A stretch of DNA of 36,094 nucleotides from Basidiobolus meristosporus CBS 931.73 (GCA_002104905.1 MCFE01000791.1:1-36094); one strand, 5' to 3'. Counted from the stretch's first letter, positions 11,490-34,800 are shown. The notes: generated from the sequence alone by a model not told the origin. Numbers and translations: made by a program.

Positions 11490-12973
11490 ATGTTTCGCCC
11501 ACTACCATTGACTCGCTCGTTGGCCAAGGTTTCAGCTACCCCAGTTAGAGGTTTCTCTTCGGTAGGCATACTGCATAGATCCTGATTGATCCAACTGTGT
11601 TTCAAGATACTGATCCAAGATTCATTCAACAAGGCCCGTTCAGCCGCTCCACCCACATCTAACCAAATGAGCCATGTTCTCGCCGGTTTCGCTGGTGGAA
11701 GTGCTGTCGCAATCGGAGGTAAGAGCTTCACTAAGTTTAAAATTCCTTCTCTCTTCGGAGTACGGTCTAACCTTATCTGTGTGTAGGGTACGGATGGTAT
11801 AAGTACTCTGGGGCCAAGGAAATCGTAGCCAAGACGCAGAACTCTCTACAAACTATTCAGGACGTTCAGGCCAAAATACCCCCACCAGGTGTGCTGGTGA
11901 ATGTCGTGAAGGGCTTTATGGGTCCTTTACTCGTCTCCGTTCCAGGTGCTCAGGGCCTGCTTGATCATATCCAGAAGCTAGAAGATACCCATGGCCCAGA
12001 GATCCAAAAGCTCTGGCACGATACCGTCAAGGAGGTATCCGATTTGACAGCTAATGGATGGGATGAGGATTCCACCAAAAATGCCACCGAGATCATCAAG
12101 CAGAGCATCGATCGTGTCCAAGAATTGGCCAAAAACATTGCTGGTGACGCGAGCGAACAGTTGTTGAGTACCTTCCCTCAAGTCAAGGATGCACTCGGAG
12201 GAAGCATTGAAGAACTGAAAGAGCTTTCTGGAAAAGGTGGCGATGAGGCCAAGGAGCTCCTTTCCAACACATTTTCAAAAATGAAGAAAATCCTCGACGG
12301 AGGAATGAACGAAAACACCATCGAGGAAATCAAGAAGTTGATCGACGAAAACAAACAGGAGGTGAAGAAGCTGGTTAACCAAGCGGGAGAGCTAGCTTGG
12401 GATAAAGGAATTGCGCTTGCCGGCCCGTTCCTCGATAAAATGCCAGAGGTAAAGAAGGAAGCTGAAAAGGCAAAGGACTTACTGTCTGAAGTCTCCAAAG
12501 AGCATGGCCCACAGTTGATGGATATGGCCAACGATCTTATGTCCCAGCTAAAGAAAATCTCGGAGAAGGGTGTAAACGAGGAGACTATCAAGGAAGCCAA
12601 AACTCTGGTGGAGAAGAAGTTATCGGAGCTCAAGGGCCTAAAGGGGGGGGTTAAGCAGCAAACCTGGCAAAAGGCTGAAGAGCTGGCAGAACCAGTTTTA
12701 AAAAAGGTTCCCGAATTAAAGCAGGTGGTAGATAAAAGCATCCCTGAAATGAAGTCTATTGCCGAAAGAAAGGGTCCTGAAGCATTCAAGATCATCAAGG
12801 ATACATACGCTGATATCCAAAAGATCGCTGAGAAAGGAGCCAATAAGGAGACCATCCAAGAAGGAAAGGAGTTGTTAGAAAAGAGACTCGAAGAGCTCAA
12901 GAAACTTGCTGATCAAGCCAAACAGGAGGGGGAAAAGGTAGGCAAGGAAGCCCAAAGAGAAATCAAAGAGTAG
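11490..12973 (+). CDS. Three-exon gene join(11490..11561,11634..11718,11787..12973), ~447 aa; predicted mitochondrial presequence, TM helix and helical repeats (fungal apolipoprotein/apolipophorin-like family)
   Basis: MFRPLPLTRSLAKVSATPVRGFSS is Arg-rich and acid-free. Intron 1 is GTAGGC..CTGAT..AAG (acceptor 11606 is an in-frame alternative) and intron 2 is GTAAGA..CTAAC..TAG; both keep frame. TM segment LAGFAGGSAVAIGGYGWYKYSGAK. TATAA at 11422-11426. Confidence 0.8.
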
Positions 12974-13986: not shown

Positions 13987-14017
13987 GTCAAGTTCTTCGG
14001 GACCTCTGACACTTGAA

Positions 14018-14048
<31 letters not shown>

Positions 14049-14110
14049 GGCCCCTGCACAAGGATGACACGTAAATCTTGAGTGGACACCTCTTCGGAGG
14101 ACATTTTTTT
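13987..14110 (+). ncRNA. U6: U6 spliceosomal snRNA
   Basis: Conserved core AATTGGAACGATACAGAGAAGATTAGCATGGCCCCTGCACAAGGATGACAC (ACAGAGA box, AGC triad, ISL). 5' stem GTCA-GTTC(TTCG)GGAC-TGAC. Ends in a T8 Pol III terminator at 14104-14111. Confidence 0.95.
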
Positions 14111-14561: not shown

Positions 14562-15027
14562 ATGGCGGAAGTGATACTCTTGGACATTCGGGCGACACTA
14601 CCTATCATGGCTGGGTTTGTTCAACAGCTATATGTCATCAATGGAGTCGCCGATGTCTCGCTAGATTTTGTTTAGAGACTGCAAACAGAAGACAGAGATG
14701 CGGCTACCATTCGTGTATACGAGAACGAGTCACTCTTGGTGAATCTCTGTGTGGGAATCCAAGGAGGATCTATTCAACTTCATCTACCGATCGGATCACA
14801 GGCATGTCTTGAAGCAACGACGACAGTGGTTTGAACGCTGGCAGGGCCCTTATACAGTACTTTGGTGGGTCAAACGAGGACATATTCCTACCCTTCAGGA
14901 GGCAAAGGAGCATCTGGGATATTTGGCTCAACATGGAGAGTCTCTTTATGCCTTTTCCTTTGCTATTCCTTCCCTCCGCCTTCCGAATGACCACCATTTT
15001 GTAGGGGGGAATATTAAATCAGTATAG
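14562..15027 (+). pseudogene. DUF3291-like (mainly bacterial family) pseudogene
   Basis: IMAGFVQQL..IN.VAD.S..FV*RLQTED.DA.TIR..LLVNL / VWES...FIYRSDH..VL..RRQWF...YTVLWWV..GHIPT..EAK...L..HG...AFSF matches my recollection of DUF3291. TAG at 14673-14675 replaces the conserved Trp, and there is a frameshift at ~14745-14748. Confidence 0.8.
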
Positions 15028-15822: not shown

Positions 15823-15953
15823 CAATAAGTCACCCAAATCAATAATTGGTATGAATAAAAGCATATACAGCCTGAGATGAAGATAGTTCCTTTTTAGTGC
15901 ATGCTATTCATTTATTTGGCATGGCATGTATGCTGATCTGATTAAAGTATTAC

Positions 15954-16309
15954 TGTTGTAAGAGTCTCGGAGGTATTGGAAGTGATTGGGAGAGCAAGTA
16001 GATTATGTGGTTTTCACTTGATCATTTATTGAATGTAAAAGCAGTATGTATACTTTTACATGGTCATAACATAACAAGCACATAGAATATGTTTAGGAAG
16101 ATCCCAAGAACATGTGTGCAAAGTTTAGGGCTGTTTGCACAACTTATCTAATTCTCATGTTCTGGGTTCTTGATATTTTGGTGAAAATATTCCAAGTAAA
16201 TCCCCACAAGGAATTTGGTCAGTATTCTCGAAAATCTGTAGGTAATGATCTCAGTGACTAAGCTAGGTCATTATTTAGGTGGAATTACAAATTTGCAGCA
16301 CTTTCAACA
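15954..16309 (-). mobile_element. Copia-family LTR, complete (356 bp)
   Basis: TGTTG...CAACA termini; colinear with the reverse complement of 1322-1731. Confidence 0.85.
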
Positions 16310-16424
16310 GTCTACACCATTAGAAATCCTTTAATTGTAGAAAAACTGAAGGCCAAGCTCTGCCCACAGCTTCCAGGGACCCTTCTTGGAGCATTCCCTA
16401 ACAGGGGTTTTGCAAAGTTCCTCT

Positions 16425-17235
16425 TGTTGTAGGAGACTTGGAGATATTGGAAGTGATTGGGAGAACAAGTAGATAACGTGGATTTCACTTCATGATTTAT
16501 TAAATGTAAAAGTAGTATATATACTTTTACATGGTCTTCGCATGACAAAATTGTAGAATAGGCTTAGGAAGGTTCCAAGAGCATGTGAGCAATGTTTAGG
16601 GCTGCTTGGACAACTTATATAACTTTCATATTCTGGGTTCCAGATATTTTGGCAAATATATTCCAAGTCAATCCTGGCAAGGAATTTGGTCAGTATTCTC
16701 TAAGATTTGTAGGTAATGATCTCAGTGACCAAGTTAGGTGATTAGTTAGGTGGAATAACAAATTATCACTACACTCCCACTCAACTAAATGTTCATACTG
16801 ACTAGTCCAAATTTTGACTCAAGATATTCAAACTTGTCTATAGCTAATGGTTTGGTAAGTATGTCTGCAATCATTTCATCTGTAAGACAGTAAGATAAAT
16901 AAACTAAGCTATTTTGTATGGTTTCACGTATGAAATGATGTCTGATGTCTATGTGCTTAGTTCTGACATGAAATGTTGGATTTCTACCAAATTGTATACA
17001 TCCTTAATTATCTTGAAATAAGGTAATATGCGTTGTTTGACATAAGCTTAAATCTTTAAAAAGCTTCCTTAACCACATTGCTTCTTTTGTAGCTTTGCAG
17101 GCTGCCTTGTACTCAGCCTCTGTGGTAGAAAGTGTTATGGTTGGCTGCTTACTTGAATTCCATGAAATTGCTCCTTAACAGTAAAGAAAGGTTTATCCTG
17201 TGGTGGATCTTCTGTATTCTAAATTTTGTCCCAGA
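16425..17235 (-). mobile_element. Copia 3' end: degenerate RNase H (16785-~17235), PPT (16774-16782), 3' LTR (16425-16773)
   Basis: Minus strand reads RRSTTG*..GAISWNSSKQPTITLSTTEAEYKAACKATKEAMWLRKL...KHIDIRHHFIRE...DEMIADILTKPL, then GAGTGGGAG and the LTR. Confidence 0.92.
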
Positions 17236-17257
17236 ACATGAAAATAAAATATGTTGT

Positions 17258-17436
17258 TCAAACAGCCTCAAACTTTGCACACATGCTCTTAGGACCCCCC
17301 TAAACCTATGCTATGTGCTTGTTATGCAAGACCATGTAAAAGTATAAATACTACCATTACAAGCAATAAATCATGAAGTGAAAACCACATTATCTACTTG
17401 TTCTACCAATTACTTCCAATATCTCCAAGACTCTTA
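17258..17436 (+). mobile_element. Copia LTR 3' fragment (opposite orientation)
   Basis: aaacagcctcaaactttgcacacatgctcttagg...tacttccaatatctccaagactctta matches 1489-1730. Confidence 0.8.
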
Positions 17437-17610
17437 TAGCATTTTTCACCCATGACAATATCTCAAAGGCCTCTTTCCTGTAGCAGTATCTTTATCTTCA
17501 CCTTGCACACTTGGTGGTTAGATCCATCTCACTTTTCAGCATAGGGAGATATTCAAGTAATAGCAGTAGTGGACATTGCAGAGAGTGACAGATTGGGGCT
17601 CATGACCTGT

Positions 17611-17955
17611 TCTGAGGGACTTGGAGATATTGGAAGTGACTGGGAGAACAAGCAGATAAAGTGGTTTTCACTTATTAATTTATTGAATGTGAAAGTAGTA
17701 TTTACACTTTGATATGGTCTTGGTATAACGAACACAAAGAGTAGGTTCAAGAAGGTCCCAAGAACGTGCATGAAAGTTTCAGGGCTGTTTGGACAACTCT
17801 GAGAATTTTAATGTTCTGGGTACCAGCTATTTTGGTTAAATGTTCCAAGTAAATCCCAACAAGGAATTTGGTCAGTATACTCTAGAATTTGAAGGTAATG
17901 ATCTATGTGACTAAGTTAGGTGAATATTCATGTGGAATTATAAATTATTACAACA
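17611..17955 (-). mobile_element. Copia LTR, near complete
   Basis: gacttggagatattggaagtg...ggaattataaattattacaaca is colinear with 16425-16773. Confidence 0.8.
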
Positions 17956-18661
17956 CCTCTCAGAGTAGAAATATCTCACTTAACCTCAAAAAGTACATAT
18001 CATGTAATTCTACTAGTTCTCCAAATTACTTCCAATACTCCATAGAGTCTTGCAATACTTTTGTTATACTTTCTTGTGGACACCATACCCATGATTGGAT
18101 ATGCTTGCAAGAAAGCCAGCATATGATAGTACATATCTCTTGTTAAGATAAATCTTTGAGAATTCTGAGCAAATTTCTTGGAGGGATTTACTTGATAATC
18201 TGAATATGCTATTGTGCCGAATTTCAACCAATTTTCCTGCACCGTTGAGAGTGTGGGTGCTGGCAAAACCCGCATATGCGTGGCACATCTTCACTAGATC
18301 TGGTCCGAACCGATTCAGTGTCCAGCCATTTCCAAATGATTATTCGAGTTCAACCTGTGGATATTCCCAATCCTTTAAATACACAGGACATCTGATTTGC
18401 CAGGAGAGTTCAAACATCGCTTCATATATACAAGCTAGGATTGAGAGTAACGAATATGCGTTTAAGACCGTATTCATCTGCTGCACGAGGGTCTCGTAAC
18501 ATGCTACAACTTACGTAATGATGGGCATGACCGCTGATGATAATCAGGGAGGTCTACAGAAACCACTATTCTTTACTATGACACTTGGTATTGCATTCCG
18601 GATTGACTTTATTTCAAGGTAACTGCTCTCGCCAATTGGATAAGCCCACAGCAATCATGAT

Positions 18662-19060
18662 TTAGCTACAGTTCCCAACATAGTTGACAGTCAGCTCGCC
18701 ATGGTTGACGTCATTATCCCCAGGATAGCCCAGTGGCACACTGCCACACACATTGCAGCCATGGTTCTGCAATTCGTGGAGTAGTGAGCATGCCTTGGAG
18801 GCAGAGATGGAGCTGCCGGTCTTCTGGGTGAAGGCGGCAATGCCACCAAGGATATGGCAGTTGGTTGCGATTCTTACCCCGGGTCCATAGATGTTCCCAC
18901 CAGGAAGACTGCAGACCTTAGCCACGAGTTGGTTCAGACTATTCCCAGTGGTGGCGCATTCACTACTCCCACGGCAATTGATGCCAAGGGCGTCGACCTG
19001 AGTCAAGAGCACCATGCTAAGGATGGCGGTGATTCCAGCAGTAACGGTTGAGGCTTTCAT
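18662..19060 (-). CDS. KP4: KP4 killer toxin-like secreted protein, copy 1 (132 aa)
   Basis: 24-aa signal peptide, then LGINCRGSS.C...NHGC.VCGS.PL...NDV..G.LTVNYV..C, the termini and Cys pattern of Ustilago maydis virus KP4. Confidence 0.95.
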   Translation of the reverse strand: MKASTVTAGITAILSMVLLTQVDALGINCRGSSECATTGNSLNQLVAKVCSLPGGNIYGPGVRIATNCHILGGIAAFTQKTGSSISASKACSLLHELQNHGCNVCGSVPLGYPGDNDVNHGELTVNYVGNCS

Positions 19061-19109
19061 GTCGAAGTGCGGCTATCGGTTGATGGTCTTTGAGAGTCGG
19101 GACAGCACC

Positions 19110-19116
19110 TTATATA
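19110..19116 (-). promoter_or_regulatory. TATA box of KP4-like copy 1 (also 21479-21485, 23316-23322, 25170-25176, 27791-27797)
   Basis: TATATAA on the minus strand ~50 nt upstream of the ATG, conserved in all five copies. Confidence 0.7.
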
Positions 19117-20778
19117 CCCAAGCCATTGCCAACAGACTGGGCATAGCCCACGCCTTGACGGCTTGCTGGTGGATGGACTGCATTGACGAAAATCATATAC
19201 AAAATAGGCGCGGCAGGAAGTCGAGTGTTTTTCCGTTCCATGTCACCTAGGTGCATCTTTTGTGCGACAAGTGAGCTTTATCACCCACAAGACCATCCGG
19301 ATTGAGGTGGTCTACTGGGGAGGCTGACCCGAACACCATCAATAGTGGTGCAGTATCCACCCCCACCCCCATATATCACTGGTCAAGCATACTGCTATTC
19401 ATTGGGCTTTTCGAGATGAATTGTGTAGCCTGGCCCTAAATGTGCCATTCCTCTCCCTACTGGAGTGTTCAGCCTGATGTTATTAGTAATCCAGGACTCG
19501 GTTCAGCTATTGAGCACTAAGAGATCAGCTTTGCTCTCGGCTATTATTTCTAAATATGTAATGGCGCACCATACCTCAGCTGCTCTCAAATGCGATAACT
19601 AGCCTACCCAGATCCTTTACTACCTAAATGCATATCTCATACACTGAAGTAATGATGGGGAAATTCCTCAAAGTTTCAGGTTATAACCGTTAAGTGGGAA
19701 AGTATCATCCATACCCTTTGAACTCTTAGATTCTAGGGTACTGGGATATTTGAATAATGGCCTATTACCGTGTTAGTTATCGAATTTGAGTCTTGGTCTT
19801 ACTTGACAGTTTCCTTCTTATTAGCTGGGAGACATTTACTCAGGAGAAATGAACCGAAAATTCTTTCTATTGGAATAGTAATATATGCAGAGGTAAGTTG
19901 TTGTGTAATCAGTGATGAAGATTACCGAAGTTGTATGGGATAGAGCTAGACATCGAGCCGTAATTTTCTGGCTGTGTACTAAAATGAAGATAAAATTCAC
20001 TGTCATGGTACCCTAAGAGATACCAAAGAAAGGTGCTTTTCTTCAACAAGAATCCCGCTTTAGGGGGCCTTAAAGTACCAAAGGTAAAGGCGATTGTATG
20101 TCTGTAGAATTCTGGCTTCAATAAAATTACATTGTCAAATGGATTAGATTGCAAATCATTACTTGATTGCGGTCAGGTACAAACTAGGTGAAGCGGGTAA
20201 AGCCGTTTGGCGTGTATTCAAGTCATATAACCAGAGGATCGCTGCCATTACTTTCTATCTTGTATAGCAGATACTAAGGAATCCCAAGGGTATAAAATCC
20301 AATGTCTAGTCATACACCAAGTTGTCGCATATTGCAATCGCCCAGCACTTGTATTAGCAAAGTGTTTATTTTCGTAAATCCGGACCGCATCTCTGTTGGC
20401 GTGGGCCCCAAACAAGTCATATGGGCAATTTTTTCGGAAAGAATGGGGTTTTCCGTGGTCTAAATAACAGTAGAAGTAGATGCTCTGCCTCATATGGCGC
20501 AAACCGAGTGACAGAAAAAGTGGATTTCGGTTGGGTGTTTTGATCCGAACTGAACAAAGAGAGTGGGGGATCGGTAAATACATTAAAAATCAAACATTGA
20601 AGAGTTCCGCTCGACGTTTACGACAATCGTGAATGTGAGCCAACTATGTGAATTTGCGTATCGATACTTCAGAGATACGGCTGTGATTGGTTCGCTACAG
20701 TGGAACGTTAGTGGTTTTTATGTGATACAGGGCGACCTAACCACTTCGACTCTTATGCATTGCTGAGGAAATGCTGGG

Positions 20779-22005
20779 TACAATTGGCATTTTAAGACTT
20801 GTTCTGTTGATAGACTTATATAGGACCATTGTGTGACCTTGTTCATATGCTGGATAAGGGCCTCGCAATATACTACAACCTACCTAATGCTGGGCATGAC
20901 TGCTGATGATAATCAGGGAGGTCTACAGAAACCACTATTCTTTACTATGACACTTGGTATTGCATTCCGGATTGACTTTATTTCAAGGTAACTGTTCTCG
21001 CCAATTGGATAAGCCCACAGCAATCATGATTTAGCTACAGTTCCCAACATAGTTGACAGTCAGCTCGCCATGGTTGACGTCATTATCCCCAGGATAGCCC
21101 AGTGGCACACTGCCACACACATTGCAGCCATGGTTCTGCAATTCGTGGAGTAGTGAGCATGCCTTGGAGGCAGTGATGGAGCTGCCGGTCTTCTGGGTGA
21201 AGGCGGCAATGCCACCAAGGATATGGCAGTTGGTTGCGATTCTTACCCCGGGTCCATAGATGTTCCCACCAGGAAGACTGCAGACCTTAGCCACGAGTTG
21301 GTTCAGACTATTTCCAGTGGTGGCGCATTCACTACTCCCGCGGCAATTGATGCCAAGGGCGTCGACCTGAGTCAAGAGCACCATGCTAAGGATGGCGGCG
21401 ATTCCAGCAGTAACGGTTGAGGCTTTCATGTCGAAGTGCGGCTATCGATTGATGGTCGTTGAGAGTCGGGACGGCACCTTATATACCCAAGCCATTGCCA
21501 ACAGACTGAGCATAGCCCACGCCTTGACGGCTTGCTCGTGGATGGACTGCATTGACGAAAATCATATACAAAATAGGCGCGGCAGGAAGTCGAGTGTTTT
21601 TCCGTTCCATGTCACCTAGGTGCATCTTTTGTGCGACAAGTGAGCTTTATCACCCACAAGGCCATCCGGATTGAGGTGGTCTGCTGGGGAGGCTGACCTG
21701 AACACCATCAATAGTGGTGCAGTATCCCCACTCACCCTCATATAATACTGGTCAAAAATACTGCTATTCATTGGGCTTTTCGAGATGGATTGTGTAGCCT
21801 GGCCCTAAATGTGCCATTCCTCTCCCTACTGGAGTGTTCAGCCTGATGTAATTAGTAAGCCGGAACCTGGATCTGCTGTTGCTCTACCTGTAGTTAGGTT
21901 TGCCCCGGCTATTATTTCTAAACATGTGATCATGGATCAGGAACTGACTATTCCACAATGTGATGGGATGCTCTATCCGATCATTTACAATCTTACTTTA
22001 TATTG
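20779..22005. repeat. ~1.2-kb block nearly identical to 24471-25695 (KP4 copies 2 and 4 with flanks)
   Basis: Shared from tacaatt(g/t)gcattttaagacttg through atcatttacaatctta; scattered substitutions only. Confidence 0.9.
21031..21429 (-). CDS. KP4: KP4 killer toxin-like secreted protein, copy 2
   Basis: As copy 1; the only copy with S62T in the mature domain. Confidence 0.95.
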   Translation of the reverse strand: MKASTVTAGIAAILSMVLLTQVDALGINCRGSSECATTGNSLNQLVAKVCSLPGGNIYGPGVRIATNCHILGGIAAFTQKTGSSITASKACSLLHELQNHGCNVCGSVPLGYPGDNDVNHGELTVNYVGNCS

Positions 22006-22018
22006 CATATTCTGAACC

Positions 22019-22042
22019 ATATAATAATAATAATAATAATAA
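22019..22042. repeat. (ATA)n microsatellite
   Basis: About 8 tandem ATA units. Confidence 0.85.
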
Positions 22043-22867
22043 AGGAATTCATCCAAGTTTCATATTAACGCATCTAAGTGAAGAAATATCATCATTTTCT
22101 TTTGAGCTCTGGGAGCCCATGATATATGGTTACTAGAGTATTTAAAGATTGACACGGTTACCCAGTTTGTGTTTGAGTCTGTGCAGCTAATTCTGCTTCT
22201 ATAGCACAGCTAGCCATCATAACACAGTAATTTTGTTCAGATTAGAGCTTAGCAAAGTCGATATACGAGATCCGGAGTTTTGATCGCAGCGCAGAGAGCT
22301 TGGCATCCAGGCCAAACAATATTATTACATAGAGAAAAGCCAAGGCAAACTGGTGTTGTCAGACAAAGCTGGGCCGTGTAGCCGTAGGGATCAGCAGTAA
22401 TGGCAGCTTCATTTAAAATCAATGCAGAAGTTTGAATATTATTTTTCAGCCAGTGTTGACGATGCTGAAGCAAGTTAGAAAGTGACAGATTGGCAAATGC
22501 TGCATAATAAAATCATAGAGCAGTTCGACTCAACTTTGGCGAGAACAATAAATTCGAGTGGTCTAGATAATTTTGCGTTTCGATGTTTCAAAGAGACGGC
22601 TGTAACTGGTAAATTACTGAAGAATGTTGGTGGTTTTCATGTGATACAGGGCGATCTAATCACCTTGGCACACATATATTGCTGAAAAAATTCTTGTAAC
22701 CCGAATGTACTACAGCTTGAGTAATGCTGGACATGACCACTGATGAAAATTAATCAGATCTACAGAAACCACTTTCCTTTAATACTCCACTTGGTATTGC
22801 ATTTCAGATTGACTTTATTTCAAGGTGACTACTCTCGCCAATTGGATAAGCCCACAGCAATCATGAT

Positions 22868-23266
22868 TTAGCTACAGTTCCCAACATAGTTGACAGTCAG
22901 CTCGCCATGGTTGACGTCATTATCCCCGGGATAGCCCAGTGGCACACTGCCACACACATTGCAGCCATGGTTCTGCAATTCGTGGAGTAGTGAGCATGCC
23001 TTGGAGGCAGAGATGGAGCTGCCGGTCTTCTGGGTGAAGGCGGCAATGCCACCAAGGATATGGCAGTTGGTTGCGATTCTTACCCCGGGTCCATAGATGT
23101 TCCCACCAGGAAGACTGCAGACCTTAGCTACGAGTTGGTTCAGACTATTTCCAGTGGTGGCGCATTCACTACTCCCGCGGCAATTGATGCCAAGGGCGTC
23201 GACCTGAGTCAAGAGCACCATGCTAAGGATGGCGGCGATTCCAGCAGTAACGGTTGAGGCTTTCAT
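22868..23266 (-). CDS. KP4: KP4 killer toxin-like secreted protein, copy 3
   Basis: As copy 1. Confidence 0.95.
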   Translation of the reverse strand: MKASTVTAGIAAILSMVLLTQVDALGINCRGSSECATTGNSLNQLVAKVCSLPGGNIYGPGVRIATNCHILGGIAAFTQKTGSSISASKACSLLHELQNHGCNVCGSVPLGYPGDNDVNHGELTVNYVGNCS

Positions 23267-23530
23267 GTCGAAGTGCGGCTATCGGTTGATGGTCTTTGAG
23301 AGTCGGGACGGCACCTTATATACCCAAGCCATTGCCAACAGACTGAGCATAGCCCACGCCTTGACGGCTTGCTGGTGGATGGACTGCATTGACGAAAATC
23401 ATATACAAAATAGGCGCGGCAGGAAGTGGAGCATTTTTCCGTTCCATGTCACCTAGGTGCACCTTTTGTACGACAACTGAGTTTATCCACACCAACATCC
23501 CTACATGACTGGTTAATTGCATTGCTATTC

Positions 23531-23557
23531 ATATATATATATATATATATATATATA
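23531..23557. repeat. (AT)n microsatellite upstream of KP4 copy 3
   Basis: About 13 AT units. Confidence 0.9.
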
Positions 23558-24722
23558 CAGCATAGCCCTAAGCTCACTACACAACTCACTACCGTAGTGT
23601 TGAGCCGATGTGCATGGCGATCCAGGACTCGGCACTGCCATTGCGCACTAAGAGATCAGTTTTGCTCCCGGCTATTATTTCTAAGTAAGTGACAGCACAC
23701 CATGCTTTTTCTGTTTTAGAATGCGATAGCAAGCCTCCCCACAGCCTTGACTACCAGATCGCCTGTCCAATATTCTGAAGCAATCATTGGAAAATTCATG
23801 CAAGTTTCAGATTATCACCAATACCATTCGAACTCTTGAATTGCAGGTTACATAGGCAATAAAGCGGTTAAAGACTGACTTGGTTGCTGTTTTATAAAAT
23901 AAGTTGAGCTTGAAACACTGCTAGACATAGTCGGAGCAAGAAGAGCCAGTAGAAGCAAGCTCAAAAGGCAGTAGCAACGACTCATCACCCTAAATTATTT
24001 AAGATATTTGAACTAATTTATATCACTTCATTGTATTGTAGATGTAAAATCAATGGCATGAGACTTTAAATATGTACTCACAGTATATAGACAGCAAAGG
24101 TGGATTCCACAAAAGAAAGGCGTTAAAATGTGCGACTCTAACTGGTTACTATCATGGACGAATCGGGGAGTGTTTAGGAATCGGCTTTGTATATGAGGCT
24201 ACTAGCCATATTTGGCGATTATGGCGCATGGTGAGCTACCTTTCCTCATACATAGCCTCCGCATGGACCAAACCAAATGCCAGACAGAGCGGGTCTAGGT
24301 CAGGTGATTCGATCCCGACGATCGTAAGACAACGCTGTATCAGCAAGTACTTCAAAATATTAAAGTTTTCAGAGATTTGACTGTGATTGGCACATTATAG
24401 TGAAAGACTAGTAGTTTTCATATACTGCATACTGATCTACCCTCCTGGGTATTCCTGAGGATATATCGAGTACAATTTGCATTTTAAGACTTGTTCTGTT
24501 GATAGACTTATATAGGACCATTGTGTGACCTTGTTCATATGCTGGATAAGGGCCTCGCAATATACTACAACTTGCCTAATGCTGGGCATGACTGCTGATG
24601 AGAATCAGCCAGGTCTACAGAAACCACTATTCTTTACTACGACACTTGGTATTGCATTCCGGATTGACTTTATTTCAAGGTGACTGCTCTCGCCAATTGG
24701 ATAAGCCCACAGCAATCATGAT

Positions 24723-25121
24723 TTAGCTACAGTTCCCAACATAGTTGACAGTCAGCTCGCCATGGTTGACGTCATTATCCCCGGGATAGCCCAGTGGCAC
24801 ACTGCCACACACATTGCAGCCATGGTTCTGCAATTCGTGGAGTAGTGAGCATGCCTTGGAGGCAGAGATGGAGCTGCCGGTCTTCTGGGTGAAGGCGGCA
24901 ATGCCACCAAGGATATGGCAGTTGGTTGCGATTCTTACCCCGGGTCCATAGATGTTCCCACCAGGAAGACTGCAGACCTTAGCTACGAGTTGGTTCAGAC
25001 TATTTCCAGTGGTGGCGCATTCACTACTCCCACGGCAATTGATGCCAAGGGCGTCGACCTGAGTCAAGAGCACCATGCTAAGGATGGCGGCGATTCCAGC
25101 AGTAACGGTTGAGGCTTTCAT
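24723..25121 (-). CDS. KP4: KP4 killer toxin-like secreted protein, copy 4
   Basis: Protein identical to copy 3. Confidence 0.95.
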   Translation of the reverse strand: MKASTVTAGIAAILSMVLLTQVDALGINCRGSSECATTGNSLNQLVAKVCSLPGGNIYGPGVRIATNCHILGGIAAFTQKTGSSISASKACSLLHELQNHGCNVCGSVPLGYPGDNDVNHGELTVNYVGNCS

Positions 25122-27342
25122 GTCGAAGTGCGCTATCGGTTGATGGTCTTTGAGAGTCGGGACGGCACCTTATATACCCAAGCCATTGCCAACAGACTGA
25201 GCATAGCCCACGCCTTGACGGCTTGCTCGTGGATGGACTGCATTGACGAAAATCATATACAAAATAGGCGCGGCAGGAAGTCGAGTGTTTTTCCGTTCCA
25301 TGTCACCTAGGTGCATCTTTTGTGCGACAAGTGAGCTTTATCACCCACAAGGCCATCCGGATTGAGGTGGTCTGCTGGGGAGGCTGACCTGAACACCATC
25401 AATAGTGGTGCAGTATCCCCACTCACCCTCATATAATACTGGTCAAAAATACTGCTATTCATTGGGCTTTTCGAGATGGATTGTGTAGCCTGGCCCTAAA
25501 TGTGCCATTCCTCTCCCTACTGGAGTGTTCAGCCTGATGTAATTAGTAAGCCGGAACCTGGATCTGCTATTGCTCTCCCTGTAGTTAGGTTTGCCCCGGC
25601 TATTATTTCTAAACATGTGATCATGGATTAGGAATTGACTATTCCGCAATGTGATGGGATGCTATATCCGATCATTTACAATCTTATTTTATGTTGTATC
25701 CTTTGAAACCATGTTGTGTTACAGGTCTTGAAATACTCCCATCTTTAAGTGTAGGGATAGCTGAACTGGTAGCAATGTGCATCAGCCTGATTTTCGGGAC
25801 TGCGGAACTATACGAACTAGATTGAGCGGGAACAGTAGTATGCTATAATGATACAATAATCGATCGAGCCTGAGGTGCCGTCAGGCGTGATTGGATGATG
25901 AATGGCCCGGAAAGCCAGGTCTATAGGGTCAGCAGGATACCGATGTCGTTGCATGATACTTGCAACAAACAGCTGGGGGGGGGGTGAAGAAATCCTCTGT
26001 AAGTGATTAGCTGCATCTTAAGTCGTCAAGTACCATATTTGGGTAATATGACAGATGTCTAGACATGCTCTTCTGATTAACAAATACCCATCAACGACCA
26101 GTCAGAATTAACTAATAATCTACAACAGGCATTGACCACCCCGCAAACCATTGAACAACACCCGTCTTCATTAAATCAGGTTATTGCGTTTGCCAGCCAC
26201 GACGAAATAACCATTGGAAATTCTCGAATGTTTGACGAAGTTGAACATGAACACATTTACCCGTTGATCATGGCTTTATACCTACTCACAATATGGGGAA
26301 CAAGACTAAAAGTAATCCACCATCACATCCCTTTCTCTAAAAAGATGTCTATAACCGTATTCCAACGCAAATTCACAATCTACCTCAGCCCATGCCAACA
26401 TATGCAACGATACAAATACAAACAAACCAACTTTTAGCGAGATATGAAATACACAGACCGGAATAGTACTGACCCAAAGTGATTACACACACACATCAAC
26501 CACGATGAAACAATAGTACACCTGATATAAATCACACCAACCAAACCCATAATAAACAATGGCCATCTAAGCTCTTCTGATTAAGAAACAGCCTCCCCAT
26601 TTACCCAAACCAAGCAGCTTACAATCCACAATATTCTTGATCGATTATTTCATAAGAGCTCATGGGAGACAGAAAAAGTTGGATAGTAAACGTTGTTAAG
26701 TTAGGCGCTGAATCAATGCTGTATAGCAAATATAAATTCTGAAGAAATGTAGAACAGTTGAAATCACTAACTCTGAGCAATATTCCCTCGTACATAACCA
26801 TGGCACGAATCGAATTAAATACAGGAAAAATTTTGTTCTGTTGGGTGACTCGATCCCATCCGAAGAAAACGGCAGATCAGCGAATGCTGTAGAGTAAAAT
26901 CATCGGAGAGTTCGACACGCCATATTTGACAACCATGCATTCAAGTGAAAAATACGATTTTGGTTTCAATGCTTCGAAGATATGGCTGCGATTGGAGCAT
27001 GACTTTGGCATATTAGTAGATTTGATGTTTTACAGGTTGATAAAGTGGGCTCAGGGCATGTACATGACATAAAAGGCTGGATATAATTGGCAAGCAATCC
27101 ACATGACCCGGCTTATTCTGTTGATAGGCTCTGTGGGGCAGTGCATGACCTTCTTCACATGCTGGATGAGGGTCTCGTAACATGCTACAACTTGCGTAAT
27201 GCTGGGCATGACTGCTGATGAGAATCAGCCAGGTCTACAGAAACCACTATTCTTTACTACGACACTTGGTATTGCATTCCAGATTGACTTTATTTCAAGG
27301 TGACTGCTCTCGCCAATTGGATAAGCCCACAGCAATCATGAT

Positions 27343-27741
27343 TTAGCTACAGTTCCCAACATAGTTGACAGTCAGCTCGCCATGGTTGACGTCATTATCC
27401 CCGGGATAGCCCAGTGGCACACTGCCACACACATTGCAGCCATGGTTCTGCAATTCGTGGAGTAGTGAGCATGCCTTGGAGGCAGAGATGGAGCTGCCGG
27501 TCTTCTGGGTGAAGGCGGCAATGCCACCAAGGATATGGCAGTTGGTTGCGATTCTTACCCCGGGTCCATAGATGTTCCCACCAGGAAGACTGCAGACCTT
27601 AGCCACGAGTTGGTTCAGACTATTTCCAGTGGTGGCGCATTCACTACTCCCACGGCAATTGATGCCAAGGGCGTCGACCTGAGTCAAGAGCACCATGCTA
27701 AGGATGGCGGTGATTCCAGCAGTAATGGTTGAGGCTTTCAT
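27343..27741 (-). CDS. KP4: KP4 killer toxin-like secreted protein, copy 5
   Basis: As copy 1, with V6I in the signal peptide. Confidence 0.95.
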   Translation of the reverse strand: MKASTITAGITAILSMVLLTQVDALGINCRGSSECATTGNSLNQLVAKVCSLPGGNIYGPGVRIATNCHILGGIAAFTQKTGSSISASKACSLLHELQNHGCNVCGSVPLGYPGDNDVNHGELTVNYVGNCS

Positions 27742-28498
27742 GTCGAAGTGCGGCTATCGGTTGATGGTCTTTGAGAGTCGGGACGGCACCTTATATACCC
27801 AAGCCATTGCCAACAGACTGAGCATAGCCCACGCCTTGACGGCTTGCTGGTGGATGGACTGCATTGACGAAAATCATATACAAAATAGGCGCGGGAGGAA
27901 GTACAGGATTTCTGCGTTTCATGCCACCTAAGTGCACCTTTTGTACGACAAACGCGCTCTATTACTCACTAGACCATTTCCAATCACCTAACCCTATGGA
28001 GACTGATCCGAGTGTCACTAATGGTGATGCGGATTCAACATTTACTTCCCTACCGTTCGAGATGAGTTGCATACACTAATCCTATGCGCGCTATTCCATT
28101 TATTGCTGAAGATTTTAGCCTGATATAAATAGTTACATAGAACTTAATTTATATTGTGGCATATGTTTTGGCTGGTATCTCTGGACATATATTGGGGTAC
28201 CACACCCTTTCTATGGGGCAAGCAAGGTATACCGCTTTCCTTAATACTCTATATTAAACTGCTACGCTAGTTTCCCACTAATTATGTCTTTATGAATTAT
28301 CATGCGGCATTGGCTGGGGTAAATCCGGCACTGTTTGAATCAATTGAGTTAATCTGCTATAGGAATAAGTTTATCATCTATACCTCAGTGGAGAAAACAA
28401 ATGTTTGTTGGTTTGAAGTAGAATTTTTGGATACTGCCAACCCTGGTTTAATTAAACAAGCTGATGTAGTCTGTTAATTGTTGGTGCTGACAGCACAA

Positions 28499-29117
28499 GG
28501 GTTGGGGGGGGAGACAGTCACTAACAGGTGAAATCTTAATTTCAGTTGAAACAAAGAAGCCAGCCCTATTGTTGTAGGTTTGATATAAAGGTGTGTAGGT
28601 GAGAGGAATTTGTAGTAAGTTAATAAGGAGAGAAGATAGTTCTCAAGTGTTCAAGACACTGCTCAGTGGAAAGGGGGGTGGCAATAGAGGTAAGAATGAC
28701 TTGTGAACAACATTAATAAGGGGAATATGATCAGGATTGATATTCATCATAAAGGGGGTGTGCTGTTTCAGATATTGCTGCCAAAGGTCTGTCAAGTACC
28801 TCAGGTAGGCTAGCTTGGCTTTTATGACTGCAGAATATAATAAGCAAATTTCTTGACTTCAGGATCTCCAAGTATAGTTCAACAGCAGGAGCCAGGTAAA
28901 GTGTGGTGTGTTCTCTTCCATGTCTTAATCAGTGGGTTGTTGCAGTGGTGAAGTCTGAGATATAATCTGGTTCTAAGGTAGAGAAGTCTGATCTTATAGG
29001 GCATAAACCCAAAACAATCCAGAAACAGAGACCTGACAAGGAGGGTGAGAGAGGTACTGGAGAAGCATTGCAACTTGGACCAAAGCAGATTTCTGTCAAC
29101 TGAATCAAAGGCCTTAG
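28499..29117 (-). mobile_element. Non-LTR unit U1: 5'-truncated, internally deleted 3' fragment of LINE family A
   Basis: Colinear with 32626-33140 and then 33761-33860. Encodes KAFDSVDRNLLWSKL (RT). Confidence 0.85.
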
Positions 29118-32100
29118 GGTTAGGGTTAGGGGGAGGGAAAGTCACCAAGTTGGTGAAATCTTTATTTGAGTTAAGAACTAATCTAAGTACAAATAAAGAA
29201 GCCAATTAAGAGGTCTAGAACCTCTCTAATAAGTAATCTAATTTATGTTTTTTTCATCTCTAATGTTTGTTTCAGCAAAGTAAAGCTCATCAGGGGTAAA
29301 TATGAAATTCAAGAGTTTTGGGGGAAGTACAAATTGTAGATGTTTGTGATCAATATAATCCAAGACTGGAGCCCAGCCTGGGATTAGGTGCAGTAGGAAA
29401 GGTGTGTGGACTTGTAAGTAGCTCTGCCACATAGATCTTAGATGGTCCTGAGCCAGTAGTCCTGGTTTCTCAGCTTTTTGAAGTTTTGAAGCAAGCTGTG
29501 TTACTACAGCAGAGCCAACCTGGGTGTGCCAGCAAGAAGATTTCAGGGAGGAGTTAGATTTAAGCCATTGTTTGATGGAGAGGTTATGTGATTTCTGAAA
29601 TTTGACTAGGAAGGAAGCACATAGATAGACCATTTGGATTTGGTATGGGTAGAACCCAAAAGCTCCACTAGTTGCATGGATATAGGGAGATACTGGAAGA
29701 TAAGGTACCAAGGATCTGATACACTGATGGAGAAATTTATCCAGGTGGTGAAGTTCTCTGGAGGTTAGGGGTATAATGTGGAGACCAAATTCAAGTACTG
29801 GCAGTACATACTGCTTCAGAAGTATAGGGATTGTTTGAATTGGAGTGTCTGGAGTGACTACTACCAGAAGCTTTTTGAGAGCCTTTTGGGCAAGATGGAT
29901 CCTATTATTCAGGTGGAGCTTTGAGTCAATCCCATGTTGACAAAACGGCAGACCTAGATACATTGCAGTTTGTTGTGGCAGAATGCTAGTGTTCTGTATA
30001 GTTGTAGTGCACCCAATTGGGACTGTCTTGGAAATTGAGAGTGAGAGGTTGTTGGCAGCCAAGTACTTCTTAATGATGGCAGAGTCTGCTATGGGATTAG
30101 GAGTAGCAATCTTGATATCATCCACATAGAGAGTTAGTAGTGGATAGGGAGAGTCTGGTGAGGGGCCTTTTGGAAATAAAGAAAAGTTGTGTAGGTATAT
30201 CACAAATAGTAAGGGACCTAGTACAGATCCTTGGACTACTCCATTTGGAACCTCATAAGTCTTGGATGTGCAACTTGGATGCCAAATTTTGGCTGAGTTC
30301 TCACAAAATAGAGAACATACAAGAAGGGTCATTTGTAGTGTGGTAACTGCTAATAGCTTTCTCCAAAGCAGAGCTCTGTCCACAGAGTCAAAGGCTTTAG
30401 TAATGTCAAACAGAATGGTTGGCTATGAGAATTGAAGTGAATGATCATGGCTTAGCACTACAGCCATATCCAAGGAGAGTTTGGGCAAGAAGCCAAGCTG
30501 TGAAGGATGGAATGGATATAGTTGAGATTGCAAGGATCTTGCTATTATAAGCTCAAAGATTTTCTGGCAGGTTGGTAGGAGTGAAACTGGCCAGTAAGAA
30601 CCTGGGAGTGAGTGTTTCCCCTTCCCTTTGTATAAGGGTATTACATTTGCCTGTGACCAGGCCTTTGGGGTAGTCAATTGTTGGGCACAGATAGAGTAGA
30701 ATGGGATAAGTAAGTGACTCATTTTGGAGTAGCACACTCGGAGTAGATTTTAGGTAATCAAGTCATGTCCAGGTGCAGTATTTGCAGGAAGCTTCTTCAA
30801 AATTTTCTCCAGAAGCTTGGCTGAAATCAAAATTGGAGATGTTGGACTGCTGGATATGGTACCAGTATGGTAGAAAGGAGGAGTGGGATGCACGGATGAA
30901 TCAAAGAATATAGGGGCCAGTTTGTCTGGTGATGGTATACTCCTTGCTTGTGGTCTCATGGCTTTGTATACTCTTGATATGGACCTTGTGGTGGCATTCA
31001 TATTTACTAAGGGCAAGGTATCCATGATATGAGCCCATAATCTAGTATGCTCAGTAATCTGTAGTGACTTGGAGTAGGAGATTGCGCTTTCCAGGAGGTT
31101 CTGTGTTTTTGGGTTAGGGAAACATAGGTAGCTGGAATATAAGGCAGAAATGATGGATTTCCATTTAAGTTGGTTTGCAGATGGCTTTTGGTAGCACTTG
31201 GTAGGCAGGGCCAGACAGCCAGTGATTATGATGAAATGCTGGTAAAATAGCCATAATGCATTTATATCATCATAAATCCATGTAGGTAAGCTGGGAAATG
31301 CATATTCTGTAAGCAAGGATAGGTAGTTGGCAAAGTCCTGTGTCTGTGATACTGAAGCTTTGGCTGGCAGGTTTGTAAATGGCTGAAGAAGGGTGCCAGT
31401 TGGTAGGGTTTTTCTGGCAGAAATGATAATATGTATTGGCTTGTGATCAGATTTCTCTAGTGAACCACAGCTTATATCCTCTGGAATGCTTGTAACCTGG
31501 TGGATGTACTGTAAGGCAGCTGGAGTAGCTGTTACCCAGTCAACACAACGTTGAGCTTGCTGAGTGTTTACAGTGACCAGATGGTTTTGTTGGAGGAACT
31601 TTGTAAAGTGCTCCTCTTGGGTCCTAAGTCTGGATGAAATAGTGGTGATATTTTCAGGGTGGGGAATATTATATCTCCCACTACCATACAAGGGATTGAT
31701 GAGCTGTTAATGAACTCTGATGTGGCCAAGAAAATTGCCAGTGTTATGGAGTTAGACAGAGATGGAGGGAGATAGATAGTAATGGCTACTATTAGTTGGA
31801 AGTGTTAGAGCATAGCAGTAATACTCATAGATGATGGATACATTTGCTGAGGGTGCAAGCTTAGAAGATGAAAGAGCAATGAGTGCCATTGAGTGAGCTG
31901 GAAATTTTGGGTGAGCAGATGAATATGCATTCAGTCTAGAGGGAAGTTTTGGCAACTTAACATCAATTAGTAGGAGCAAGGAATATTCCTTTTTCAGTAA
32001 GTTTTCTAATTCAGCTACTGTTGGAGTGATGGAGTTGCAATTGAGCTAAGAGTATGTTCTGTAGTCAGGCAGACTCTGAGGTTGCCTGTTCCTGCTGAAA

Positions 32101-32625
32101 CTCTTGCACTGCCCTTTGTAAATTTCCAGAATTATTCCACAACTCTTCAAATGGAGCTTGTGTAATGTCTTTCAGGATTCTAATTGCTTCCTCTTTCAAG
32201 AAGTAGGCCACATCATAGGTTGGAGCCTGTTTCTTAATGGCAGCAAAGAATAGCCATAATTGCCATGTGAGCTGGGGCTTGTTGAATATTCCTGGCTCAG
32301 TGTCCATTGACTCTGGTGGAATGATTGTGAATTTGGTAGGCACCCAGTTAAGATTTTTTGCCAGATACTTAGTCAATGCAGTGGAGACGTTTCTGTCTAC
32401 AATCATTTCTAGGATCTTTCCTCTTCTCCAAGCTAGGTTAACAATTTTTGAAGTGTCATTATTCAGAGAGTAGATGTACGTCTGATGTTTGATATGGTAG
32501 TCCATGGAACATTGGCAAAGTATAGCCAGGACCAATTCTGGAGCTGAGGTAAGTTTGCTGGAGGCTTATAGGTAGACTTCCTGGCAGGTTGTGTGGCAGG
32601 CTTTAGTGTTCCAAGGTAGCAAGTT
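29118..32625 (-). mobile_element. Non-LTR unit U2: degenerate LINE family B, ORF1 part (~32065-32625) plus APE-RT ORF2 (~29238-31990) with stops and frameshifts
   Basis: APE-like MVVGD, VDWV, SDHKPI. RT NVIPLYKGKG, YWPVSLLPT, QLGF, DITKAFDSVDR, GVVQGSVLGPLLF, LYVDDI. ORF1 piece WSWLYFANVP..SKIVNL is homologous to U6 (chain unit). Confidence 0.9.
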
Positions 32626-34271
32626 GGTTAGGGGGGAGACAGTCACCAACAGGTGAAATCTTTATTTCAGTTGAAACAAAGAAGCCAGCGCTACTGTTGT
32701 AGCTTTGATACAAGAGTGTGTAGCTGAGGGGAATTTGTAGGTAAGTTAATAAGAAGTGATGATAGTTCTTCAGTGCTCAAGACACTGTTCAGTGGAAGGG
32801 GGGTAGCAAGAGAGGTAAGAATGACTTGTGAACAACATTAATGAGGGGAATGTGATAAGGATTGATATTCATCATAAAGGGAGTGTGCTGCGGCAGATAT
32901 TGCTGCCAAAGGTCTGTCAAGTACTTCAGGTAGGCCAGCTTGGGTTTTTCTGACTGCAAAATATAGTTGAGCAAACTCTTGACTTCAAGATCTCCAAGTA
33001 TAGTTCTCCAGCAGGAGCCAGGCATGTAGTGTGGTGTGTTCTCTTCCAGGCCTTAATCAGTGGGTTGTTGCAGTTGTGAATGTCTGAGATATAATCTGGT
33101 TCTACGGTAGAGAAGTCTGATCTTATAGGGCATAAACCCAAAAGCACCAAGAATAGCATGTCTGTAGGGGCATTCAGGCAAATGAGGCACCAAGGAGGTA
33201 ATGCACCATACTGCAAACTTGTCAAGCTTAGTGCAGTCTCTAGAAGTAAGAGAGAGAAGCGGTAAGCCAAATTCCAGGACAGGGAAGACAAACTGCTTGA
33301 GTAGAAGGAGGCAGCTGGGTGCTGAAGTTGTAGGAGGAGTAACAGCCAGTAGCTTGTGGAGTGCCTGTCTTGCCAGGATAATTCTCTTCTTCAGGTGTGC
33401 TCCAGAGTCTAGTCCAGTAGGAAGGAAAGGAAAGCCAAGATATGTAGCAGAAACCTGAGCAGGTAGAGTGGAGTTCTCCAAGTTGATGGGAGAGCCCAAA
33501 GGTACTGTCTTTGCAATGGAAAGCTGGAGATTATTCTTCTGCAGATACTGGTGGATGGTCTGGGAGTCTTGTTGCACATTGGAGGAGGATATTCTGATGT
33601 CATCAGCAAAGAGAGTAACCAGGCAGTCAGCTGAGAGTCTTGGGAAGTCATTCAGGAAGATGGCAAACAGTATAGGACCAAGCACAGAGCCTTGAACCAC
33701 TCCATTAGGAACTGAGAACACAGCTGATTGCTCACTTGGGTGCAGAATTCTTGCTTGTGGATCCAGAAACAGAGACCTGACAAGGAGGGTGAGAGAGGTA
33801 CTGGAGAAGCATTGCAACTTGGACCAAAGCAGATTTCTGTCAACTGAATCAAAGGCCTTAGTAATATCAAACAGAACAGAGGGATACTTGCACTGGAGAG
33901 AGTGATCTTGGCTAAGTATGACTGCATATTCCAAGGAGAGGCCAGGAACAAAGCCAAACTGTGCAGGATGAAACTTGAGGGAGTCAGAGTAGAGCTCCTG
34001 AGCAAGCAGAAGCTCAAACACCTTTCTGCAGGTGGGCAGCAGAGATATTGGCCTGTAGGAGCTAGGATCCAGGTGCTTTCCTTTACCCTTGTACAGTGGC
34101 AGAACATTTGCAAAGACCATTCCTCAGGAGTAGAAAGCTGGGCTGAGCATTGCTGAAACAGTGGAAGCAGAAGTGCAGACATGGCCTTGGTACTAGTCTT
34201 CAGAAGCTCATAAGAGATTGTGTCCACACTTAGGTGTAGTATTATAGTAAGGCTAGAAAGTTAGAGAGCAG
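32626..34271 (-). mobile_element. Non-LTR unit U3: 5'-truncated LINE family A with an intact-looking RT domain (33053-~34260)
   Basis: YRPISLLPTCRKVFE, QFGFVPG, FDITKAFDSVDR, GVVQGSVLGPILF, LFADDI, YLG. Confidence 0.92.
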
Positions 34272-34800
34272 GGGTTAGGGGGGAGGAAAGTCACCAAGTG
34301 GTGAAATCTTTATTTACTTATGACAAGTATCTAAAGAAGCCAAGTTAATCTGAAGTAATTCCTAGAAAGCTAGGTCTGAGAGATATCTTCCTGGTAAGCC
34401 AGGTCTGAGAGTTGAGAAGCTGAGTGGTACTATATTTCCTAGTTAGCTAGGTCTGAGAGAGGTTTCCTGGAAAGCCAGGCCTGAGAAGTGAGAATCTGAA
34501 TATATCTGAGCTAAGTTATACTGGTTTGCGGTAGCTGAATTGTGGCCGGAATGGCCAGTAGACTGGGGGAACTGAGATGAATTTCTGGGCAATCACTGGC
34601 CAAATTTACTAGGCAAATCTGACCAATTAGCATTTCAAGGATTTCAGCCAATCAGAGCCTTTACTTTGCCTGATGGTTGATCAAGCCATCTCCCAATGAG
34701 CACACATCAATTTATTGATCAAATTTTGCTGGATCCAGGATTTGAACCCACAACCATGGGTATGGAAGGGTTAGGGATAACCACAAGGCTAAGTGTTCTT
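34272..34800 (-). mobile_element. Non-LTR unit U4: non-coding ~530-bp SINE-like element with a tRNA-like head and LINE-type tail
   Basis: A box-like TAGCCTTGTGG (34781-34791) and B box-like GGTTCAAATCC (34738-34748) at near-tRNA spacing. ~78-bp internal duplication (34360-34500). Tail shared with the LINEs. No ORF. Confidence 0.65.

Follow-up and report, generated by a model that had tools for sequence, protein, structure and literature searches.

Here we describe a tandem array of five genes for KP4-like secreted proteins in Basidiobolus meristosporus CBS 931.73, an early-diverging fungus of the Basidiobolomycota that lies outside the Dikarya. The window, i.e. the whole stretch of DNA analysed, is the complete contig MCFE01000791.1 (36 094 bp; assembly GCA_002104905.1), from a strain whose source was gecko dung and whose genome was sequenced with PacBio (PMC7466969). 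We consider it probable that these are functional-looking genes for KP4-fold secreted proteins that evolve in concert and are amplified for dosage, with a product that inhibits competing fungi. Five co-oriented open reading frames (ORFs) on the minus strand, each of 132 codons with an ATG start, are all intact and require no intron, and 129 of the 132 protein columns are invariant among them. The original prediction for this DNA had already claimed five co-oriented, intact and near-identical genes at 18490–27950, which agrees with the homologous extent found by self-BLAST (18466–27977), and its copy-to-copy distances (2369, 1837, 1855 and 2620 bp, start to start) were reproduced exactly. It had added that such an array would be notable in an early-diverging fungus, which the host indeed is. 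No further copies or fragments beyond the five were detected by tblastn within the whole window. The features of the array are as follows.

18466..27977, minus strand: whole array, five repeat cores and four diverged spacers (self-BLAST extents; repeat-family spacings 2369/1837/1855/2620)
18601..18619, minus strand: AATAAA-containing 3' motif of copy 1, likely polyadenylation signal (motif scan)
18662..19060, minus strand: KP4-like copy 1, 132 amino acids (aa), intact (ORF, Pfam Kp4 3.1e-30, alignment)
19105..19119, minus strand: TATA-box motif of copy 1 (motif scan; unit alignment)
19560..20758, no strand: spacer 1, GC 0.41, with only short 76–79% patches common to other spacers and ORFs lacking a Pfam match
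20970..20988, minus strand: AATAAA-containing 3' motif of copy 2 (motif scan)
21031..21429, minus strand: KP4-like copy 2, 132 aa, intact (ORF, Pfam, alignment)
21474..21488, minus strand: TATA-box motif of copy 2 (motif scan)
22021..22703, no strand: spacer 2, GC 0.38
22807..22825, minus strand: AATAAA-containing 3' motif of copy 3 (motif scan)
22868..23266, minus strand: KP4-like copy 3, 132 aa, intact, protein identical to that of copy 4 (ORF, Pfam, 1KPT match, AF2, Foldseek)
23311..23325, minus strand: TATA-box motif of copy 3 (motif scan)
23488..24450, no strand: spacer 3, GC 0.41, with an (AT)13 microsatellite at 23531–23557
24662..24680, minus strand: AATAAA-containing 3' motif of copy 4 (motif scan)
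24723..25121, minus strand: KP4-like copy 4, 132 aa, intact (ORF, Pfam, alignment)
25165..25179, minus strand: TATA-box motif of copy 4 (motif scan)
25713..27111, no strand: spacer 4, GC 0.41, unique
27282..27300, minus strand: AATAAA-containing 3' motif of copy 5 (motif scan)
27343..27741, minus strand: KP4-like copy 5, 132 aa, intact (ORF, Pfam, alignment, public contig record)
27786..27800, minus strand: TATA-box motif of copy 5 (motif scan)

The proteins are true members of the KP4 family with a predicted KP4 alpha/beta-sandwich fold, because a profile search, a sequence match to a solved structure and a structural model agree; the homology to KP4 that had been proposed is thus borne out, also by hidden Markov model search. 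All five copies match Pfam Kp4 (PF09044) at 105 bits against a cut-off of 27.8 (E about 3e-30; profile positions 4–124/125). The sole significant sequence match in the PDB is 1KPT, the KP4 toxin of Ustilago maydis virus P4 (UmV-KP4), at E 2e-20 and over all 105 chain residues. An AlphaFold2 (AF2) model built from 50 relatives has a mean predicted local distance difference test score (pLDDT) of 88.7, with only residues 1–24 of low confidence, and a Foldseek search with it likewise yields 1kpt_A as the sole significant match (E 7e-12; template modelling (TM) score 0.92, target-normalised; root-mean-square deviation 1.5 Å; 108 columns; 47% identity).

Alignment to 1KPT indicates that eight of the ten cysteines of viral KP4 are kept, the missing two being the partners of the Cys35–Cys60 bridge (the disulfide map of the viral protein is taken here as quoted in a preprint). 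We computed the share of each cysteine and residue per column on an alignment of 212 single-domain family members. The six core cysteines (pairs C5–C78, C11–C81 and C44–C105 in KP4 numbering) are all present in the array proteins and are 95–100% conserved in the family. The Cys35–Cys60 bridge occurs in the viral protein only (1/212), and the Cys27–Cys67 bridge, which the array proteins retain, in 28 of the 212 (13%).

Each copy appears to be equipped for expression and export. A 15-nt motif containing TATATAA lies about 45–60 nt 5' of every ATG and is invariant (five matches versus 0 expected), as is an AATAAA-containing motif about 45–60 nt past every stop codon. The TATA element that had been assigned to each gene is found in every copy, and for the signal peptide likewise assigned there is a signal-peptide-like N-terminus of 24 residues, recognised by rules and by alignment to KP4. 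This predicted signal peptide (residues 1–24) has Lys2, a hydrophobic core (mean Kyte–Doolittle value 2.23) and Val/Ala at positions −3/−1, and alignment places the first residue after the predicted cleavage site opposite residue 1 of mature KP4. The mature protein (about 108 residues) has no dibasic site and carries one N-x-S/T sequon.

The pattern of divergence along the repeat unit suggests that the array is old. In self-comparison, repeat cores of 770–1265 bp are 93.5–97% identical, while the spacers between them are mostly non-homologous, with a few 76–79% patches in common. In the five-unit alignment, 15 of about 600 columns are variable between −150 and about +450 relative to the ATG, a block that comprises the core promoter, the coding sequence (CDS) and the first ~50 nt of the 3' untranslated region (3'UTR) and is ~97.5% invariant among copies. 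Variability rises to 22% of columns in the 50 nt upstream of this block and to 16–28% in the 100 nt downstream; farther out, more than half of the columns are variable or the units cannot be aligned. Of the 399 CDS sites, 7 are variable (three non-synonymous, two of these in the predicted signal peptide, and four synonymous), giving 98.7–99.7% identity among copies. Variable third codon positions number 4/133, against 69/406 sites in the directly adjoining flanks (Fisher p = 8e-6). Uniformity thus extends to silent sites, UTRs and promoter, beside decayed spacers, so that selection on the protein is insufficient as an explanation. Since the ~600-bp block is near-invariant, whereas spacer identity has dropped to 75% or to a level where no alignment can be made, we infer that the array has been homogenised by gene conversion or unequal exchange, i.e. 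by concerted evolution, together with purifying selection.

What might such an array do? Five equivalent transcription units, each with its own promoter and polyadenylation signal, would make one product, and five copies would raise its dose. Dosage amplification, which had been suggested from the near-identity of the copies, fits these genes because they are near-identical, intact and individually provided with promoter and polyadenylation signals. The product would be exported as a four-disulfide protein of ~108 residues, not cut by Kex2 as there is no dibasic site, and would act outside the cell, where it would curb the growth of fungal competitors in dung and gut; homology and genomic association suggest this role. 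KP4 itself has antifungal, Ca2+-channel-related activity, and growth inhibition is described for KP4-like proteins (1KPT entry title; papers including PMC9506348). By analogy with viral KP4, which acts on Ca2+ uptake, the array protein would probably hit a target at the cell surface. An effect on Ca2+ uptake or on the growth of target fungi that Ca2+ relieves is known, from the literature, for viral KP4 only. That it is an antifungal growth inhibitor acting there we regard as an evenly balanced proposition. Elsewhere in the same genome a Kp4 paralogue stands beside three tandem, signal-peptide-bearing genes with CHAP domains, which supports a role in antagonism. We know of no immunity gene that comes linked with KP4, and the visible absence of one at the array is uninformative.

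Several points weigh against this interpretation. The equivalent of KP4 Lys42 is Thr66 of the array preprotein, and changing Lys42 to Gln cut the activity of viral KP4 by 90% (Gage et al., 2002, as quoted in a preprint). Threonine is the commonest residue in this column of the family (34%; Lys 10%). The mature array protein is neutral (pI ~7.0), while KP4 is basic (8.6). Because of the threonine and the neutral charge, the exact target may differ from that of KP4; the toxin analogy of the original prediction thus holds for family membership, but the Ca2+-uptake mechanism cannot simply be transferred. The signal-peptide call comes from simple rules and alignment rather than a trained predictor. 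With one genome to judge from, a recent spread of a cassette of about 0.6–0.8 kb into older spacers, instead of ongoing conversion, may also account for the uniform block. Finally, public gene models place the start codon differently. GenBank has listed five genes here since the genome release, as Kp4 hits or "killer toxin", with lengths of 132, 151, 117, 117 and 117 aa. Three of these models begin at a Met within the ORF and thereby lose most of the predicted signal peptide, and another begins 5' of the TATA motif and takes in a 65-nt intron. The 132-codon reading is the version conserved across all five copies. The inconsistent models would hide array genes from secretome predictions. The exact array protein is recorded on one contig only, MCFE01000791.1, its closest named relatives are entries of the form "killer toxin [Basidiobolus meristosporus CBS 931.73]", and the literature searched contains no paper linking KP4 with Basidiobolus in a relevant way, nor does it cite either assembly accession.

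The proteins might instead serve as effectors in host interaction, aimed at other eukaryotes of the gut such as host epithelium, protists or nematodes. Basidiobolus inhabits the guts of herptiles, a sister strain was isolated from a human eye, the title of the 1KPT entry has KP4 acting on fungal and mammalian calcium channels, and KP4-like proteins of Fusarium inhibit wheat root growth and contribute to virulence (PMC9506348). However, a 2025 structural survey, which places the KP4 family in Ascomycota, Basidiomycota and plants, finds it absent from animal-pathogenic fungi, and one paper states that KP4 has no effect on humans or plants. With CHAP-domain neighbours of a paralogue pointing to microbial antagonism and nothing in the sequence indicating a particular target, we regard a host-directed role as unlikely.

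Less likely still is a non-toxic role, e.g. in carbohydrate binding, self-signalling or development, where amplification would answer a need for an abundant structural or adhesive product. The second structural match is to the glycan-binding protein Y3 of Coprinus comatus (probability 0.97), a 'meiotically up-regulated gene' family of Pfam is matched weakly, below threshold (E ~0.1), and Lys42 is not conserved. Yet Y3 reaches a TM score of 0.43–0.48, and the match to KP4 is far stronger (0.92 versus 0.48); members of the fold that were tested in the papers cited all inhibit the growth of some organism. Inhibition of competing fungi is the function that we favour.

The array is part of a larger set of Kp4-domain genes, which number at least nine in CBS 931.73 and at least two in Basidiobolus ranarum. 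At least four paralogues are dispersed in CBS 931.73 (P0002, P0003, P0053, P0291), and two come from B. ranarum (P0289, P0290); all carry the annotation 'killer toxin'. P0002 and P0003 are 77–81% identical to the array protein, the P0053 group ~47%. These paralogues share genus and subfamily with the array but differ in being single-copy loci with AT-rich codon usage, their GC content at third codon positions (GC3) being 0.31–0.36 versus 0.61 in the array. Between the array and the paralogues on contigs L002 and L003, non-synonymous divergence (dN) is 0.09–0.15 and synonymous divergence (dS) is saturated, and two more distant Kp4 genes of CBS 931.73 have close counterparts in B. ranarum. Because dS is saturated and a divergent Kp4 lineage is common to B. 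ranarum, the family is, judged by sequence divergence, old in the Basidiobolus genome and long predates the array.

The paralogue at L002:8833–9231 (MCFE01000856.1) has an intact 132-codon frame, a mature part 81% identical to that of the array and a GC3 of 0.31. It keeps six of the eight cysteines, its long-term dN/dS against the array is low (0.03–0.05), and it may be drifting out of function. Two other loci, those of P0053 and P0291, couple Kp4 with CHAP, a bacterial-type domain of the peptidoglycan-hydrolase kind. On MCFE01000158.1 (L008:10001–14523) a distant Kp4 paralogue precedes three co-oriented CHAP-domain genes (177 aa, 96–97% identical, period ~1.1 kb), each with a signal-peptide-like N-terminus, and the pairing of Kp4 with CHAP recurs on MCFE01001273.1 (L010:8944–11236). 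The Kp4–CHAP locus looks like a second tandemly amplified locus for secreted antimicrobials. With the Kp4 array and the triple CHAP array together, tandem amplification of genes of the secreted antimicrobial type would be a repeated theme in this genome, and we suggest that it may be a general strategy in a crowded gut community.

Beyond Basidiobolus, the family comprises 417 clusters at 50% identity (E ≤ 1e-3) and 930 clusters at 90% identity (E ≤ 1e-5). Named members are overwhelmingly from Ascomycota, with some from Basidiomycota (Mycena), the moss Physcomitrium and one liverwort; the only early-diverging fungus among them is Basidiobolus. Viral KP4 (P0043; UniProt Q90121) is 47–49% identical to the array protein. 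We ranked proteins by their best single-domain score against viral KP4, among sequences gathered from searches around the array protein and hence biased to its relatives, with the following result.

P0232: 90.6 bits
P0227: 90.2 bits
P0004: 85.9 bits
Array protein: 85.4 bits
Best named Dikarya protein (Penicillium hordei): 74.5 bits

A search seeded with KP4, non-exhaustive and covering nine word-sharing candidates, agrees with this ranking. The gene for P0227, on a 9.9-kb contig of GCA_015689235.1, adjoins pieces of a PTR2 transporter gene. In a neighbour-joining tree of 197 sequences (108 columns, deep branches poorly resolved, the sample biased to relatives of the query), a single split of 33 members unites viral KP4 with the Basidiobolus proteins and consists mostly of proteins with the C27–C67 cysteines; the smallest split holding both has at most 35 taxa in 62% of 200 bootstrap replicates. 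This grouping is suggestive, not decisive. No KP4 relatives were found among the 2.9 million viral contigs of IMG/VR, and no relatives of the array on JGI metagenome contigs.

These patterns raise the question of where the viral gene came from. We put forward, tentatively and as something that we doubt more than we believe, that the Basidiobolus array proteins and the environmental sequences marked by C27–C67 represent the cellular subfamily from which the U. maydis virus got KP4. If so, the nearest identifiable cellular kin of a classic viral toxin would sit in an early-diverging fungus of animal guts and not in Dikarya, and the array would be a naturally amplified, concertedly evolving KP4 locus of 'ancestral type'.

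The reverse course, in which complementary DNA of a KP4-type double-stranded RNA (dsRNA) satellite was recently captured by the fungus and then amplified, has some attractions: the array proteins rank near the top as single-domain matches to viral KP4 among the sequences gathered (85 bits versus 74.5 for the best named Dikarya homologue) and share with it the uncommon C27–C67 disulfide, the genes are intronless, and reverse transcriptases of the long interspersed nuclear element (LINE) type adjoin the array. Other observations speak against it. The flanks are free of viral sequence and every copy has a eukaryotic TATA promoter. The array is flanked by host genes and retroelements on a nuclear contig, not carried by a dsRNA virus or satellite, and its GC3 (0.61) equals that of the neighbouring ATPase gene (0.62–0.63); it is chromosomal and cellular, with host-like codon usage. 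Identity to the viral protein is merely 47–49%, dS to paralogues in the same genome is saturated, a divergent Kp4 lineage is also present in B. ranarum, and none of the 2.9 million viral contigs carries a KP4 relative. The existence of more than 900 cellular clusters favours a virus capturing the gene from a cell, and recent endogenisation is, in our judgement, very improbable.

That the copy number is an artefact of assembly (haplotigs or mis-joined reads at a smaller real locus) is scarcely credible, even with a contig as short as 36 kb and other Kp4 loci occurring as near-duplicate contigs (L008, L010), given that this is a PacBio long-read assembly, that artefactual duplication would yield identical units, and that here each copy has its own substitutions (cores 93.5–97% identical) and its own unique spacer.

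Comparison with known systems shows which aspects of the array are familiar. UmV-KP4 and the array protein belong to a common Pfam family with a common predicted fold (TM 0.92), both are single chains without Kex2 processing (predicted for the array protein), their mature N-termini coincide exactly in the alignment behind the predicted signal peptide, and the array protein shares four of the toxin's five disulfides, the uncommon C27–C67 included. The viral protein differs in being dsRNA-borne and basic, with Cys35–Cys60 and Lys42, whereas the array is chromosomal, in five copies, neutral, with Thr at that position and in a host of another phylum. The secreted protein Zt-KP4-1 of Zymoseptoria tritici (8ACX) inhibits fungal growth, has a KP4-related fold and likewise carries Thr at the Lys42 equivalent, but it is a remote structural relative (Foldseek E 0.08, TM 0.43–0.49, 14% identity) that is undetectable by sequence. 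The plant homologues in Physcomitrium patens and the liverwort Calypogeia fissa, like the array, place PF09044 in a lineage outside Dikarya; they differ in being 38–44% identical to the array protein. We know of no KP4 array in plants. Their homologues have been read in the literature as a sign of movement of the family between kingdoms, and, again according to the literature, they cluster with the Fusarium type.

The closest precedent for the arrangement is in Fusarium, where KP4L-1, -2 and -3 are, like the array genes, chromosomal and contiguous genes that arose by local duplication and encode cysteine-rich PF09044 proteins, secreted in Fusarium and predicted to be so in the array, with three genes in 3.4–5 kb (PMC9506348). 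The Fusarium paralogues are mutually diverged and have the common cysteine pattern lacking C27–C67, in contrast to five near-identical copies in a non-Dikarya host. Aspergillus multicolor has a divergently oriented pair of KP4-like genes. With a three-gene cluster in Fusarium and a pair in Aspergillus, the array is therefore a larger and more homogeneous case of a known tandem-KP4 pattern, with five co-oriented copies within 9.5 kb; what sets it apart is the copy number, the near-identity with its signs of homogenisation, and the host lineage.

Research on KP4-type proteins treats them both as antifungals and as plant-pathogen effectors. The Kp4 genes of Basidiobolus, at least nine in number, extend the family to an animal-associated lineage outside Dikarya. 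Basidiobolus is a symbiont of herptile guts, and its relatives infect people. The array would show cleanly, in nature, how a gene for a secreted toxin-like protein evolves in concert. Among the sequences gathered here it also provides the closest cellular relative of the viral toxin that bears a name, which has a bearing on the source of the viral gene.

To the right of the array, a chain of LINEs linked to telomeric repeats had been proposed, and this is confirmed in outline by reverse transcriptase (RT) ORFs, repeat copies and telomere-like motifs, as listed here.

28506–36094: head-to-tail retroelement chain, with LINE-like RT ORFs on the minus strand at 29238–30383 and 33053–34120 (RVT_1 4.9e-26)
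28506–28917, 32631–33042, 34807–35219: three head-to-tail copies of a ~410-bp segment
29114–29131: perfect (TTAGGG)3, accompanied on its strand by five shorter motifs of telomere-like sequence

GC skew is strongly positive across this flank (+0.22 to +0.34). A Penelope-like or telomerase-like identity was considered for the RT and rejected, the best PDB matches being LINE-1 ORF2p and a group II RT, not telomerase reverse transcriptase (TERT). The array may be subtelomeric; the contig end carries no telomeric repeats.

To the left, the 'copia nest' of the original prediction was not recovered: Pfam scans of ORFs there found no domain of copia or of any other long terminal repeat (LTR) element (gag, integrase, RVT_2), for ORFs of at least 70 aa in 13–18.5 kb and at least 85 aa elsewhere in the left half of the window, with frames ended at stops and not read through, so that shorter degraded copies could escape. 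This flank instead holds a dispersed AT-rich repeat, a DUF3291 fragment and a U6 small nuclear RNA (snRNA) gene. The repeat sits at the supposed nest (15940–18050) and again at 984–1997, with further copies on two other contigs (L003:4394–4720 and L002:6393–6527). Its copies are ~200–530 bp long, 77–87% identical, in direct and inverted orientation and without a coding match; it may be a solo LTR, a miniature inverted-repeat transposable element (MITE) or a short interspersed nuclear element (SINE).

Apart from the array, the window is ordinary chromosome of a fungus, and no part of it looked human. Other genes in the left half of the contig are the following.

3143–3655, minus strand: ORF with a CAP/PR-1-type cysteine-rich secretory domain, very high GC3 (0.83), another secreted-protein gene
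6544–10241, minus strand: heavy-metal (copper-type) P-type ATPase in two ORFs (6544–7635 and 7704–10241), presumably split by an intron
11891–12973, plus strand: 360-aa ORF in a strongly A-rich stretch (AT skew 0.35)
13987–14108, plus strand: complete U6 snRNA gene (Rfam RF00026, 79 bits, E 1.2e-18)
14749–15024: DUF3291 gene fragment

The ATPase carries four HMA domains, which are visible in the DNA as a 270–290-bp repeat at 9280–10079. The product of the 360-aa ORF, with apolipoprotein-like helical-repeat matches that are sub-threshold only, is probably a low-complexity or coiled-coil protein.

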